From sequence record LC819006.1: a stretch of DNA of 64,000 nt; one strand, given 5' to 3'. Shown here one piece after another: positions 1,987 through 61,865 of this stretch (position 1 is its first letter; each line of letters starts with the position of its first letter). The notes under the pieces were generated by a model. It was not told the origin of the DNA. It saw only the letters and a list, made by a program, of their open reading frames with translations, and did no database searches. A program made the position numbers and the translations under genes.

Positions 1987-3510
1987 ATGACCCCAAGACT
2001 TCTTCTTCTCAAGATCATCACGCTCCTGCACCTCGAATCACAGATCGAAGGTGAGAATGCACGATCGTCTGACTTGGCTACCAGCCTGCTCGCCACCGTC
2101 AAAATTCCTGAGGCCGACGTGGGCCTCATAGACAGTGAACGAGAGATTATTGGCTCGCTCTACAACATATGTCGCAAACTCGCCACCGCTACGCCGGGCG
2201 ACGAGATGGACAAATCAGACCTCCTTCAGGAAGTCCGGTTGCATTGCGGCAGTGAAATCGATCTGTTCGAATCCTTCAAAGAAGGGATCGCGATTGAACT
2301 ATCACAAGATGGTCTCAAAAAGCGTGTTGGCTTCATCCGTAAAGAGCTCAAATCGTATCTACATTACGAGGGTACGAAAAAGCGCATCATGGATGCTGCC
2401 CATGCACTGCGTTTCAAGGAGAATTCGATTGAAGATATGGACAAGTATCTTCGCGACTTCTCAACTGACATTGAATCATCGCTCAGTAAATCCAGCAAGC
2501 AGGACGAAGCTATTCTCGGCACAATCGACATGGCAGATAAAGAGTCGGTTGTGAAAGCTGCATGTTCCGTGTCAGATGAGCAATCGGGTGCCGGTAAGCT
2601 CAAGACGCATTTGCAAGATCTGAATGACATGATGAATGGCGGCATGCGCCGCGGTGAATTCGTCTGTACTTCGGCTCTTCCGCACAACAACAAGACCGGC
2701 TTTTCGTTGGACATCTTCGCTGGTGTCGCAATCAACAACGATCCGTATCTGATTGATCCGAAGAAGAAGCCTTTGCTTCTGCGCATCTCGTTCGAAGATG
2801 ACGTCGAAATGAACTTCAACCACCTCTACAAGCACTTCTGGGAACAGGAGCATGGCGAGGTGGCAGTGATGGTCGGTAAATCCGAAGAGGAAATCGCCCA
2901 GTACGTCATGGACAAGATGACGGCACGTGGCTGGCATGTTCGCATGTACAAGGTCGATCCTTCGATGTGGTCGATCTTCGATCTGTTTGCATTCGTGCGT
3001 GATCTGGAATCGCAGGGTTATGAAATTGCTCTGTGTATGCTGGACTACATGCGTAAGATGCCGACTACGGGTTGCGTACAGGGCATTGCAGGCGCTGACG
3101 TCAGAGACATGGCTCGTCGTTGCCGTAACTTCTTCAATGCCCGTAAAACGGCGTTTTACACGCCGCACCAGATCTCGACTCAGGCTAAGGAAATCCAACG
3201 TTCGGTGCCTAAGGACTTTGTCAAGATGCTGCCGGGTGGCGGTTACTACGACGGCTGTAAATCGCTGGATGCAGAAATCGATCTGGAAATCTTCCAGCAT
3301 ATCGAGAAGCACAATGGTCATTCGTATCTGACCTTGCAGCGAGGCAAGCATCGTAATGCTCCGGTGCTGGCAGAAGAACTGAAGTATCTGGTTTACCAAT
3401 TCTACGACATCGGCGGCATTCCTCCTGACATTGGCGGAGAGCGTTCCGGTTTGCGTAAGGTTGGTGGCAAGCGTGCTTCGGAAGCTGAAACCGATTTCGA
3501 TTGGCTGTAA
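1987..3510 (+). CDS. dnaB: DnaB-like replicative helicase (phiKZ gp118-like)
   Basis: GGMRRGEF followed by degenerate Walker A ALPHNNKTG, Walker B MLDY, HQIS motif and C-terminal QRGKHR. Confidence 0.9.
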   Translation: MTPRLLLLKIITLLHLESQIEGENARSSDLATSLLATVKIPEADVGLIDSEREIIGSLYNICRKLATATPGDEMDKSDLLQEVRLHCGSEIDLFESFKEGIAIELSQDGLKKRVGFIRKELKSYLHYEGTKKRIMDAAHALRFKENSIEDMDKYLRDFSTDIESSLSKSSKQDEAILGTIDMADKESVVKAACSVSDEQSGAGKLKTHLQDLNDMMNGGMRRGEFVCTSALPHNNKTGFSLDIFAGVAINNDPYLIDPKKKPLLLRISFEDDVEMNFNHLYKHFWEQEHGEVAVMVGKSEEEIAQYVMDKMTARGWHVRMYKVDPSMWSIFDLFAFVRDLESQGYEIALCMLDYMRKMPTTGCVQGIAGADVRDMARRCRNFFNARKTAFYTPHQISTQAKEIQRSVPKDFVKMLPGGGYYDGCKSLDAEIDLEIFQHIEKHNGHSYLTLQRGKHRNAPVLAEELKYLVYQFYDIGGIPPDIGGERSGLRKVGGKRASEAETDFDWL

Positions 3511-58396: not shown

Positions 58397-58493
58397 GTTT
58401 TGGCCGACCTTTTGTCAACGGTAATTAAAAATCAGACGACACAATGTTGTGCCTGAAATTGTCCTACGCCTCATAAAAAAGGTGCGAAATAGA

Positions 58494-60590
58494 ATGGATA
58501 ATATTCTGTTGCTCAACAAGAGGAACAAAACAGCAGTTTACCCGAGTGATCTGCTGGTCATTGACATTGACAGAACCTGTCCGATTCTCGGAAATCCGTT
58601 TCCGATGAAGGACAAAGACGACGATGAAGAACGCTCTTTTGTGATCGATTCATACCGTCGGTATTTTGAAAAAGAGTATGCCAATAATGGGATACTCACC
58701 AAACGAATTCATGAACTTGCAGACCTGGTTCGCTCTGGTAAGCGGATCGGTCTTCGCTGCTGGTGTCACCCTAAACCGTGTCACGGCAACATCATCATCT
58801 CCAAGATCAAAAAACTACTGGAAGGAAACATGTCTGAATCGCCTCAACAACCCAGTAAAGAGTTTCTGAACTATCCCTTCGCAAAGGAAGACATCGATTA
58901 CGTCGAATGTCGTTTCGCTATCCACATTCCGAAGGATCGAAACAACGAGAAGGGCATCGACCTTCATGCAGTTAAGGAAATCATTCACTTCAAGGATGGC
59001 ACGACCAAGCCATGGGTGAAGTACATTCCGAACTACCAATGCAAATTCTGGACGACGAAGCCTCATGTTCGTAACGGCAAGTTTGCACACAAGCAGAAGA
59101 AAGAATGGGAGTCGCTCGATAACCTGATTGAAGGTCAGGCTACGGCTTCCGGCATGGGCTTTGCAGTAGCTCGTGCGCTGGATCAGATGCGTCTGGCTGA
59201 TCGTTATTTCGATCTGAAGGATTCGCCCTACGTCTACGGTCTGGATATTCCGTCGACGGTGCAGCTCAAGCACGACTACACCGTGCGTATGCAGGGTAAG
59301 GCAGATACGCCGTTTACCATCGCTTATTCTGATACTGAAACGAACATGCTCGGTATCGAAGAAGGTGCTTCGAAACACATCATCATGCAGTCGCTCTTCC
59401 ATCAGGATGGACGTCTCTTTACGGTGATTCTCGAAGACTTCGTGAAAACGCTGCCTAATCCGCAGAAAGATCTTCGCGCCCTCTATGACGAACACATGCC
59501 TGAGCAAGGCAAGGAACTCGTCAAGGATTGGGAAATCGCAATCGTTAAAGAACCGATCGACATCGTCAAGGCGATTCTGCAACGTTGCCATACGTGGCAG
59601 CCTGACTTCCTGTCGTTCTGGAACATGATCTTCGACTTGGACAAAATGATCCAGTGCGTTGAAGACGCCGGTTATCGTCCCGAAGACATCTTCTGCGATC
59701 CTCGTCTGCCGCGTGAGTTGCGTTATGCTTTCCTGAAGCGCGCTAACCCGAGTAAGACGTCGGCATCGGGTCGTCTGATGACCAAGAAGCCTGCTGATCA
59801 GTGGCATAGCTGGCTGTGCCCTGCCTCGTTTTACATCATCGACCAGATGGCTACCTACCGCTTCGTTCGTAAATCGAAGCAGCTGGAAAAGTCTTACGGT
59901 CTGGATGACATTCTGGGCAAGGAACTCGAAGGTCTGGGTAAGCTTAAGCACAAACCTGCTGAAGGTTTGACTAAAGCCGAATTCCACATCTTCATGCAAC
60001 AGAAATATCCTGGCGAGTATGTGATCTATCACATCTGGGATGCGGTCTGTATGCACCTGCTGACATTGAAGACGAAGGACTTGTCATTCTCGTTGCCAGG
60101 TACGACGGAGTTCTCGGACTTCATGAGCTTTGAATCGGAACCGAAGCGCTATATCCACAAGTTCCATTTCTACGCATTGGAAAACCATCGATGCGTGACT
60201 GGCGTATCCAGTAAAGCTCTGGTGCAAGAATACGACGACATGACCATCTCCACCAAGGGTCACATCGTTACTCTTGAACCACACTTGACTGTGGATTCGG
60301 GGATGAAGATCTTCAATGATTATCCCGAGCTACAGACAAACTTCTACGGCCATAATGCTGACCTGGACGTTAAGTCCAGTTATCCATACGGCCAGTGGGT
60401 TTTCAACATGTCGCGTACTACGACTGTTCGAGAACTCGTTGAGATCGAAGGTGTGCGCGATCATGTTCGCCGCATCCAGGGTCTTAACATCTCTGGTGGA
60501 CGCAGTAATGCAGTTGAATTCTGTACTGAGATCTTCGGTCTTCCGAGCCTCGCTGAACTCGACAAGATTTACGATCAAGCACATGCATAA
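58494..60590 (+). CDS. Split family-B DNA polymerase, exonuclease/motif-A subunit (phiKZ gp82-like), with in-frame N-terminal DUF4326-like domain
   Basis: ExoI DTE, ExoII WNMIFD, ExoIII YHIWD, pol motif A DVKSSYP, no DTDS motif. N-terminal GNPF...LRCWCHPKPCHG. Second SD+ATG at 58830. Confidence 0.85.
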   Translation: MDNILLLNKRNKTAVYPSDLLVIDIDRTCPILGNPFPMKDKDDDEERSFVIDSYRRYFEKEYANNGILTKRIHELADLVRSGKRIGLRCWCHPKPCHGNIIISKIKKLLEGNMSESPQQPSKEFLNYPFAKEDIDYVECRFAIHIPKDRNNEKGIDLHAVKEIIHFKDGTTKPWVKYIPNYQCKFWTTKPHVRNGKFAHKQKKEWESLDNLIEGQATASGMGFAVARALDQMRLADRYFDLKDSPYVYGLDIPSTVQLKHDYTVRMQGKADTPFTIAYSDTETNMLGIEEGASKHIIMQSLFHQDGRLFTVILEDFVKTLPNPQKDLRALYDEHMPEQGKELVKDWEIAIVKEPIDIVKAILQRCHTWQPDFLSFWNMIFDLDKMIQCVEDAGYRPEDIFCDPRLPRELRYAFLKRANPSKTSASGRLMTKKPADQWHSWLCPASFYIIDQMATYRFVRKSKQLEKSYGLDDILGKELEGLGKLKHKPAEGLTKAEFHIFMQQKYPGEYVIYHIWDAVCMHLLTLKTKDLSFSLPGTTEFSDFMSFESEPKRYIHKFHFYALENHRCVTGVSSKALVQEYDDMTISTKGHIVTLEPHLTVDSGMKIFNDYPELQTNFYGHNADLDVKSSYPYGQWVFNMSRTTTVRELVEIEGVRDHVRRIQGLNISGGRSNAVEFCTEIFGLPSLAELDKIYDQAHA

Positions 60591-60641: not shown

Positions 60642-61235
60642 TTACCATAGAGAATACCCGACCGGCGTATATTTGGGCGACGCCTGCCAATCAACAACCG
60701 TGAAACCGTTTGAGCCATACGGACTGGTAGCCATCGGATAAAACGTCGAGTTACCAGGACTGTATGAAGTCAGGTTAACGGCACCTTCGTTCGTACCATT
60801 GCGATAGTACGTCATGAGCTTGTTATCGAGATCTACAGCAACACCAACGTAATCGCCTTGAGTAAAGCCTGTTACACCATAACTGACGCGAGCGTTGTTG
60901 CCATAGATCAGTACGCTATAGCCTCCTGAACAATACCAGAAAATTTCTCCGGAAGCACTCGTCCAGGGAGTTACTGAAACTGGCGTTGCAGCCGTAGCGA
61001 GACCAATAAGCGGACTGTAACTAACACTACCTTCGAACTGAAACGCGAGGATTTCGAAGTAGTATTTACCTGAGCTTCTCGCCACGGTCGCCCTTACACC
61101 TTGACCATACGGTGAGATAGTAGCTCTAAGCGAGTTATTTGAAAGGGTGACCTGAGATCCTTTATTGTTCGTGTCCCAGATTGTAGTAGTTCCAGTTACT
61201 ACTTTTTTCTTTAAAAGCAAGTTGGCGGCTAGCAT
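60642..61235 (-). CDS. SPRY/B30.2 (concanavalin-like) domain protein, paralog 1
   Basis: SGKYYFEI...GDYVGVAVDLD...YYRNG. Confidence 0.75.
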   Translation of the reverse strand: MLAANLLLKKKVVTGTTTIWDTNNKGSQVTLSNNSLRATISPYGQGVRATVARSSGKYYFEILAFQFEGSVSYSPLIGLATAATPVSVTPWTSASGEIFWYCSGGYSVLIYGNNARVSYGVTGFTQGDYVGVAVDLDNKLMTYYRNGTNEGAVNLTSYSPGNSTFYPMATSPYGSNGFTVVDWQASPKYTPVGYSLW

Positions 61236-61238
61236 ATC

Positions 61239-61829
61239 TCACCAAAGTCCATAGCCAGAAGGACAGTATAGCGGGCTCGGCTGCCAGTCGACCACTGTGG
61301 CGGCAGTTGCTGAGTTAGGACTCGCACAAACCGGATAGAAAACCGTGCCCGCCGAATAGTTGTTGGCTCCCCAGCCAATCAAAGGCTGAGCAACGCCGTT
61401 CAAGATCCAGTAAATGGTCTTGGCAGTCATGTCAAGAGCAACGCCCACGATGTCGCCTTGTTTAGGCGTCGTACCGTAATTGAAACGCTGATTGCTACCA
61501 TAGATGAACTGGGCTGAACCCGATCCACCGTAATACCAGAACATTTCATAGCTGCCGGTATTCCACGGTGACTGGAAAGGCGTGGTCGTTGTGCCGAGTC
61601 CAATCATCGGCATATAGATACCGGACTCGAATTGGGTCAGCTTGACCTCGTAGTACCATTTACCCGAGGTCTGGGAAAGAGTAGCGAAACAGGCTCCGCC
61701 GGATTGTCCGCAGTTCGCCCGAAGATTGCTGTTCGTTACAGTAACAGAAGAAGCTTTAAGGGTCGGACTCCACGTCGTCGGCGTGGACGCCAGAGCCTTC
61801 TTCTTAAGAAGCATTGCTGAATCAAACAT
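61239..61829 (-). CDS. SPRY/B30.2 domain protein, paralog 2
   Basis: SGKWYYEV...GDIVGVALDM...WILNG. Start uncertain (TTG 61853 or ATG 61829). Confidence 0.75.
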   Translation of the reverse strand: MFDSAMLLKKKALASTPTTWSPTLKASSVTVTNSNLRANCGQSGGACFATLSQTSGKWYYEVKLTQFESGIYMPMIGLGTTTTPFQSPWNTGSYEMFWYYGGSGSAQFIYGSNQRFNYGTTPKQGDIVGVALDMTAKTIYWILNGVAQPLIGWGANNYSAGTVFYPVCASPNSATAATVVDWQPSPLYCPSGYGLW

Positions 61830-61865
61830 AAGAAGCCCGGTATGATTTGTCAAAAGTCATAGAAT

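Follow-up and report, generated by a model that had tools for sequence, protein, structure and literature searches.

In the 64,000-nucleotide stretch of sequence record LC819006.1 analysed here (the window), the gene at 58494-60590 on the plus strand encodes an in-frame fusion between a DUF4326 domain and DNAP-N, one of the two subunits of the split family-B DNA polymerase of phiKZ-type jumbo phages. The fusion, which occurs in a group of giant soil phages, is real and permanent, and it is both old and selectively maintained. Taking all the observations together, we consider that the best explanation is an old, maintained fusion that has probably kept a working internal start and that may tether a DNA-processing enzyme to the replicase, and we think that this explanation is probably correct.

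The reading frame runs uninterrupted from the ATG at 58494 to the stop codon at 60588-60590 and specifies 698 amino acids. A 2.4-kb stretch shares 100% identity with Burkholderia phage FLC8 (LC667450.1) and with Ralstonia phage FLC4-11C, and 83-98% with FLC6, RSL2, RsoM3USA, RSF1 and SURPRISE13; all of these are phiKZ-type jumbo phages of the genus Chiangmaivirus. The DUF4326 domain (58494..58829) comprises amino acids 1-111/112, of which residues 23-102 (58560-58799) match Pfam PF14216 in a profile search (E 6e-15; 56.1 bits against a gathering cut-off of 25), and a six-frame search located exactly one copy of the domain in the FLC8 record (55.8 bits). The DNAP-N subunit (58830..60590), made up of an N-terminal domain, a 3'-5' exonuclease and the first part of the palm with motif A, matches phrog_3011 ('DNA polymerase') over residues 113-698 (E ~1e-201). 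The original prediction, drawn from the letters of the window and their open reading frames (ORFs), had proposed this in-frame fusion, and the open frame together with the two profile matches bears it out. Its description of the DUF4326 segment as AT-rich holds only weakly, the GC content being 44.6% in the DUF4326 part and 49.5% in the polymerase part.

The junction between the two parts is intact wherever we could follow it. The frame is open across all five isolate species, including RSL2, RSF1, RsoM3USA and SURPRISE13, with no stop between the domains, and among the isolates the DUF4326 part tolerates a one-codon in-frame indel. Contigs from three soil-metagenome runs belonging to two studies, which cover 58460-59020 or more, span the junction and show substitutions only, without an indel or a stop. 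A contig from an RNA library covers both the DUF4326 and the polymerase parts, an observation that proves neither a transcript nor the starts. A word search with the full protein recovered 28 clusters (at the 90% identity level, drawn from NCBI, ENA, JGI and Logan assemblies) that combine PF14216 with the polymerase and are 52-100% identical. Among the isolates, the ratio of non-synonymous to synonymous substitution rates (dN/dS) is 0.11-0.24 in the DUF4326 part (dS 0.6-1.0) and 0.055-0.096 in the polymerase part. The public records of related genomes make four different choices of start codon, and some call the gene 'hypothetical'. These discordant starts, and one record that holds the polymerase part alone, are what could be said for an assembly artefact or a recent accidental loss of the stop codon between two genes, an idea that can safely be dismissed in the face of the same frame in five isolates, 28 protein clusters and independent metagenome contigs, the tolerance of an in-frame indel and the purifying selection on the DUF4326 part. 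The original prediction had allowed for an accidental stop loss and for an indel or stop concealed at the junction, neither of which survives, and it had described the domain as recently captured, which must also be abandoned since the protein identities and dS values above place the fusion before the divergence of the whole clade. In the RsoM3USA record (L003; L and P numbers denote individual loci and proteins) the polymerase is annotated from the internal ATG and a 53-amino-acid antisense 'hypothetical protein' is placed over the DUF4326 coding region (1751-1912); both are probably mis-annotations. The annotation of gene 58494-60590 in public records should be corrected.

A single insertion, in the ancestor of one clade, placed DUF4326 between the 5' leader and the start codon of the polymerase, and domain and polymerase have co-diverged ever since. 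In a quick IQ-TREE phylogeny of the polymerase part, a single clade with 100% support contains all fused forms (P0031 is a fragment from a contig end). The unfused P0030 is basal, and the unfused P0032 and P0023 are nested among the fused forms, an arrangement that implies one gain followed by two losses. Against this, the approximately unbiased (AU) test does not reject monophyly of all fused forms (p 0.36), so the tree by itself does not prove the losses; the case for secondary loss comes from the maximum-likelihood topology combined with an orphaned 5' motif at L076, the locus of P0023, which point to a secondary deletion of the domain there. The identities of the DUF4326 and polymerase parts co-vary (rho 0.79, 25 proteins), and the DUF4326 part diverges faster, with a mean identity of 53% compared to 68% in the polymerase part. 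Between FLC8 and RSL2 the dS of the DUF4326 part (0.61) is twofold that of the polymerase part (0.29), and the GC content at third codon positions (GC3) is also lower in the DUF4326 part (0.39-0.51 versus 0.60). The higher dS and lower GC3 may result from faster turnover, weaker codon bias or recombination near the junction.

Fused and unfused loci have identical synteny, with thymidylate kinase downstream and a divergent 436-amino-acid gene upstream. DUF4326 is absent from more distant DNAP-N homologues (460-630 amino acids), and the domain is present in only 3 of 67 phiKZ-type DNAP-N loci of IMG/VR (within the ORF or up to 3 kb upstream). In four unfused relatives DUF4326 is found nowhere in the 200-280 kb records, two of which are 100% complete according to CheckV. 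A word search with the 112-residue domain alone gave zero matches, which is expected from the length window and is not proof of absence. Since some relatives do without the domain, we regard DUF4326 as an accessory part of the polymerase.

The 5' leader carries a conserved motif, CCTCATAAAAAAGGTG (58469..58484, plus strand), which includes the Shine-Dalgarno (SD) sequence AAGGTG of the predicted long isoform and lies 9 nucleotides before the ATG at 58494. Of 10 fused loci checked, 8 have a 16-nucleotide motif of this type 9-10 nucleotides ahead of the ATG of DUF4326; the exceptions among fused loci are L080, where the distance is 4 nucleotides, and L078 and L079, which have more diverged versions. 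The motif is absent in the unfused L012, L077 and L013-L030, and in the unfused L076 it is kept with one mismatch, orphaned 29 nucleotides from the polymerase ATG. It is not repeated within the window and so is not a general promoter. No sigma-70-type promoter was found inside the gene.

The polymerase part is the orthologue of phiKZ gp82, the DNAP-N of the split chimallivirus family-B polymerase. It has ExoI (D280-x-E282; 59331-59339), ExoII (N377..D381; 59622-59636), ExoIII (Y512..D516; 60027-60041) and motif A (D623-L-D625..SYP; 60360-60386), all recognised as sequence motifs on the plus strand, and motifs B and C (K..NS.YG, DTD) are absent from it, the combination that defines DNAP-N and that the original prediction had described. 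The columns of D280/E282, D381, D516 and D623/D625 are invariant or nearly so in 52 homologues, and the acidic residues of the Exo motifs and motif A correspond to phiKZ D151/E153/D251/D452/D562. The model of the full-length protein has a predicted local distance difference test (pLDDT) score of 82.6 and is confident for residues 120-570. A Foldseek comparison pairs it with RB69 gp43 and Pol epsilon (E 1.7e-13, probability 1.00), and the family-B fold is seen in its N-terminal and exonuclease domains. The low-confidence C-terminus of the model is the piece that co-folds with DNAP-C. Homologues occur in ~300 phiKZ-type phage records. The family has diverged too far for Pfam DNA_pol_B to match any polymerase in the FLC8 record.

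In phiKZ, gp82 (DNAP-N) and gp50 (DNAP-C) form a 1:1 family-B polymerase that works with the RNase H-clamp protein Rhc; the palm insertion is where the two subunits divide (Basu et al. 2026, bioRxiv 10.64898/2026.09.30.755723). The polymerase part described here shares with gp82 the N-terminal domain, the four-acidic-residue exonuclease, motif A and the palm-insertion split. The two differ in that gp82 is without DUF4326 and has a lineage-specific little-finger insertion instead; N-terminal fusions go unmentioned in the phiKZ preprint. The partner subunit is encoded at a great distance from DNAP-N; in SURPRISE13 it is gp3, adjoining an SH3 protein (PMC11898562). The second polymerase subunit is not within the window, where the neighbouring genes are without assigned function.

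The ATG at 58830 (Met113) represents the ancestral start of the polymerase subunit. We suggest that it is probably still used, so that the gene would give rise to a long DUF4326-DNAP-N of 80.9 kDa and a short DNAP-N of 67.9 kDa. All 27 fused proteins keep the methionine where the last helix of the domain ends, 12-17 residues beyond the C-H motif, and its codon is ATG in 14 of 14 DNA loci. In the unfused homologues P0023, P0032 and P0033, the start aligns with this methionine. Its flanks are variable (no residue is shared by more than 10 of the 27 proteins from -3 to +8), and 31-69 residues separate the C-H motif from the polymerase anchor among the fused proteins. The residue following the methionine is Ser, Thr or Ala in 22 of 27. 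In the full-length model the two well-folded parts are joined by a short flexible linker, residues 112-118, which is the only stretch of low confidence between them.

Features of an initiation region surround this codon. In the window a GGAAGG sequence (58820-58825) and a 4-nucleotide spacer precede the ATG (together 58820..58832, plus strand), as the original prediction had noted. Across the 14 loci, SD-like pairing upstream averages -4.2 kcal/mol, compared to an in-gene background of -2.5 kcal/mol; most loci have such a signal, and two lack it. The 60 nucleotides centred on the ATG are the least structured part of the gene in the same 14 loci, with a mean folding free energy of -4.9 kcal/mol versus -10 to -15 kcal/mol elsewhere, including the equally AT-rich DUF4326 part; the mean at the first start is -10.1 kcal/mol. 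All 14 loci are less structured and A-richer at synonymous sites than synonymous-codon shuffles (mean z 1.34). The gene thus has a conserved, in-frame internal start codon with initiation-region features, as is characteristic of dual-start genes. The two isoforms that the original prediction had considered possible are backed by the conserved ATG, the unstructured A-rich mRNA and the unfused relative that starts at the same methionine. Its claim of a retained internal start holds for the ATG and does not extend to the GAAGG SD, which is confined to the isolates.

Several points weigh against the use of two starts. The SD-like signal is strong in the isolates only, being moderate and not clade-wide, and some fused loci (L010, L083) have a weak one or none. 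Part of the lack of structure and of the richness in A around the ATG may stem from a linker rich in Lys, Glu and Asn; the excess at synonymous sites is moderate, and the 14 loci, which share ancestry, are not independent. The two isoforms are themselves predicted from sequence. Alternatively, only the full-length fusion may be made; Met113 would then be a vestige or a residue needed for structure, and the open mRNA would follow from a flexible linker that is rich in A. The weak SD in L010 and L083 sits well with this alternative, as do the abundance of Lys/Glu/Asn/Thr codons in the linker and the spread of the per-locus fractions in the synonymous shuffles (0.003-0.34). It is harder to see, if only the fusion were made, why the methionine should be the sole invariant residue in a linker that varies so much in both length and sequence, why Ser, Thr or Ala should so often follow it, why all 14 loci should deviate in the same way from the shuffles, or why the same codon should be the start of the unfused relatives. 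We regard a single product as the less likely outcome, albeit one that carries some weight, and prefer the two isoforms.

With two isoforms, only a fraction of the replicases would bear DUF4326. T7 gene 4A/4B provides a parallel: one frame yields two forms of a replisome protein, the shorter of which arises from an internal methionine with its own ribosome site and lacks the N-terminal accessory domain. Both T7 products have been shown biochemically, unlike the short form proposed here, for which the argument comes from sequence comparison. If the two isoforms are confirmed, this would be another phage that tunes the composition of its replisome by alternative initiation.

The AlphaFold2 model of the DUF4326 domain (mean pLDDT 95.2) has a b-b-a-a-b-a order of secondary structure (b4-8, b20-24, a44-63, a67-80, b84-89, a98-111). 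Every one of 83 viral DUF4326 sequences has N34 (the asparagine of GNP), C89, W90, C91, P93, C96 and H97, and all of these residues are kept in FLC8 and in all its fused relatives. Conservation and the secondary structure of the model identify C89-W-C91-H-P93-K-P-C96-H97 (58758..58784, plus strand) as the predicted active-site loop. In a structural search against 48,161 representative chains, the top match was the C-terminal domain of RapZ (Z 6.4, root-mean-square deviation 3.3 A, 94 of 112 residues), followed by ~30 Cys-dependent phosphatases (PTEN, dual-specificity phosphatases (DSPs or DUSPs), viral protein tyrosine phosphatases (PTPs) and the baculovirus RNA 5'-phosphatase) and also CbiL-type methylases. 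A match to Pfam DUF488-N3a was weak and under the cut-off (17.5 bits versus 27). The coherence of the structural matches and the weak DUF488-N3a match fit the placement of DUF4326 in the rhodanese-phosphatase superfamily (Iyer et al. 2021/2022, PMC7824862, PMC9503650). With a superfamily assigned and fusions to replication proteins noted in the same papers, the domain is not uncharacterised, as had originally been supposed.

In our model C89 ends the central strand, before the loop and the last helix, which is the P-loop position of Cys-phosphatases; the fold is Rossmannoid with the active-site loop after the central strand, as in the rhodanese-phosphatase fold, at a modest Z. In 2023 Burroughs and Aravind reportedly recognised a RapZ-C/DUF488/DUF4326 clade within this superfamily. 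The likeness to RapZ-C and to the Cys-dependent PTPs and dual-specificity phosphatases (PDB 5o5s, 2j16, 4ki9) covers a three-layer fold over the whole 112 residues and the Cys that ends the central strand, followed by loop and helix; the differences are an identity of 4-13%, the lack of CX5R and a loop of the form C-W-C-x-P-x2-C-H. A number of observations count against a phosphatase-like enzyme. The Z values (<=6.4) are under the safe level of the tool (8), a Foldseek search with the domain model gave no significant match, the arginine of C-X5-R is absent (C89 is followed by W-C-H-P-K-P-C-H, with none at +6), and the three Cys and the His of the loop could form a metal site instead.

We rejected membership of the classical PTP/DSP family, whose C-X5-R signature the domain does not carry. 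PDB sequence searches with the protein, the full-length profile and the domain profile gave no meaningful match, and NCBIfam and PADLOC searches gave none. The ESM Atlas holds no structure of these proteins, and the feature neighbours of the domain there are all DUF4326 clusters.

In 78 further viral loci DUF4326 is mostly a stand-alone gene of ~100 amino acids among DNA-metabolism genes, with SNF2 helicases, RuvC, RusA, uracil-DNA glycosylase (UDG), 5'-3' exonuclease, methylases, NAD synthase and Tad3 as neighbours. The fused forms comprise X-DUF4326-exonuclease-PolA (L115/P0055, P0061), X-DUF4326-PolA (P0069), DUF4326-UDG-exonuclease-PolA (P0066), UDG-DUF4326-PolA (P0060, P0064), an insertion in an XPG-type nuclease (P0067), and fusions to an NrS-1-type primase-helicase (P0057), to NADAR (P0065) and to a YAcAr SLOG domain (L142, P0068). 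In Bacillus phage AgentSmith (L007), a gene annotated 'toprim domain-containing' (2501-3214) consists of DUF4326 and a weak NADAR match (28 bits, under the cut-off). Vibrio phage CP-T1 has a DUF4326 gene for 102 amino acids that shares 4 nucleotides with the start of the DNA polymerase gene; this polymerase is unrelated to that of L115. The family-A and family-B fusions and the CP-T1 overlap indicate that DUF4326 has been set before unrelated replicative polymerases several times. The six proteins with PolA, all from metagenomic viruses, resemble the FLC8-type fusion in having DUF4326 N-terminal of the polymerase core in one polypeptide, and differ in their unrelated polymerase (Pol A), which often comes with a family-4 UDG and a 3'-5' exonuclease.

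DUF4326 in large DNA viruses has been described as fused to replication and restriction-modification components (Iyer, Anantharaman, Krishnan, Burroughs, Aravind 2021, PMC7824862; Iyer et al. 2022, PMC9503650), and the same authors predicted that the domain is enzymatic, acts on ribose-linked terminal phosphates and is linked to replication. The domain in those cases is the same Pfam domain, with replication components, or Macro, SLOG and NADAR, as partners; the partner here is unlike theirs in being the DNAP-N of a group 1 (phiKZ-type) phage. The FLC8-type fusion adds to the known theme of DUF4326 placed before replicative polymerases and agrees with Iyer et al. 2021. For the retained internal start and the domain-less relatives, no description was found in the searchable literature.

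Our best single guess as to function, which we hold tentatively and at somewhat less than even confidence, is that DUF4326 is a Cys-dependent enzyme of the rhodanese-phosphatase superfamily that would act on phosphate or sugar-phosphate groups of DNA. Candidate substrates would be a 3'-phosphate, a deoxyribose-phosphate or ADP-ribose-derived blocking groups at primer ends or in the template. The N-terminal domain and exonuclease of a family-B polymerase are situated on the primer-end and template side of the enzyme, and a tether beside them could allow the replicase to clear blocks as they are met. The recurrent partners of DUF4326 (polymerase, proofreading exonuclease, UDG and flap nuclease) argue for DNA rather than soluble signals, and the phosphatase-like fold points in the same direction; that the domain may act on damaged or modified DNA is a reasonable inference. 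Polymerase-linked end-cleaning modules are known from Pol beta, with its 8-kDa deoxyribose-phosphate (dRP) lyase domain, and from bacterial LigD, with its 3'-phosphoesterase domain. The analogy lies in a small, polymerase-tethered enzyme domain that clears blocks of phosphate or sugar-phosphate and so lets synthesis go on; the folds have no relation to each other, and for DUF4326 such an activity is a prediction. A more specific proposal, of which we are rather unsure, is that of a replicase-borne repair or counter-defence enzyme, which would strip phosphate-linked blocks, including the ADP-ribose adducts of host defence, ahead of the polymerase, its dose being set by the two starts.

DUF4326 might instead act on soluble nucleotides derived from NAD+ or ADP-ribose (host immune signals or toxic ADP-ribose phosphates), with the fusion serving co-expression or import into the phage nucleus only. 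The terminal phosphates of ADP-ribose or its breakdown products are the target proposed by Iyer et al. 2022 (PMC9503650), and the NADAR fusions (P0065 and, weakly, AgentSmith), the YAcAr SLOG fusions (L142, P0068) and the presence of Tad3 and NAD synthase among the neighbours are in keeping with it. The prevalence of stand-alone viral DUF4326 genes beside mixed DNA-metabolism genes, with some fused to NADAR or SLOG, also weighs against our preference, as it fits soluble ADP-ribose substrates as well as it fits DNA. A scavenger of soluble signals would have no obvious gain from a 1:1 tether to the replicase, however, and the repeated fusion to DNA-handling enzymes (family-A and family-B polymerases, UDG, XPG-type nuclease and primase-helicase) and the lack of a partner in FLC8, where no NADAR domain was found, are difficult to accommodate. 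We therefore consider this alternative doubtful.

Less probable still, in our judgement, is a non-catalytic DUF4326 that, as in RapZ-C, would bind a phosphorylated ligand, a nucleic acid or a metal (through the Cys3-His loop) and so regulate or localise the polymerase. The Cys at the nucleophile position, in surroundings that are invariant across 83 diverse viral sequences, is what is seen in enzymes, and catalysis is the prediction of Aravind and co-workers (PMC7824862, PMC9503650). In favour of a binding role, the top structural match, RapZ-C, is a ligand- and RNA-binding module, the CX5R arginine is missing and the C-x-C-x4-C-H arrangement resembles a metal site. We continue to prefer an enzyme acting on DNA.

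Some further features lie close to the gene. A small inverted repeat of the GCACA..TGTGC type (58438..58453), recognised by its conservation in the divergent intergenic region, is kept in nearly all related loci, fused and unfused, L076 included. On the minus strand it resembles a terminator, with a hairpin and a run of T; the whole intergenic RNA folds no better than shuffles. Directly downstream of the polymerase gene, and convergent with it, are two tandem paralogues on the minus strand (60642-61235 and 61239-61853), both phrog_10080 (SPRY/ConA-like). These SPRY genes vary in number and kind among relatives, with one SPRY gene in several loci and an F5/8 type C domain in L078 and L079.

DNAP-N proteins of other chimallivirus lineages (L037/L038, 821 amino acids; L058/L064, 709 amino acids) have N-terminal extensions of ~140-160 residues that give no Pfam match and might represent further accessory domains or else wrongly assigned start codons. 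In Pseudomonas phage Pa_AttikonH10 (L167, 3318-3698), a phiKZ-type DNAP-N gene ends in AAC CCA AAG TAA, which contains a C_CCA_AAG heptamer (X_XXY_YYZ), and the -1 frame is open for 126 codons; the stretch is annotated with two tiny ORFs only. The -1-frame ORF has no Pfam match, NADAR included, and is without similarity to DUF4326, and its parallel with the DUF4326 extension is a lead only.

DUF4326 is common in phages and giant viruses and has so far been known by prediction. In the fusion it is joined to an enzyme for which a new structure and assays exist (the phiKZ DNAP-N/DNAP-C/Rhc replicase), and the coexistence of natural variants with and without the domain offers a direct and cheap route to its substrate. 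If our proposal is true, and if phiKZ-type Pseudomonas phages do make a frameshifted C-terminal extension of DNAP-N, it would be a general, as yet undescribed trait of the replicases of nucleus-forming phages that DNAP-N carries accessory enzymes in sub-stoichiometric amounts.

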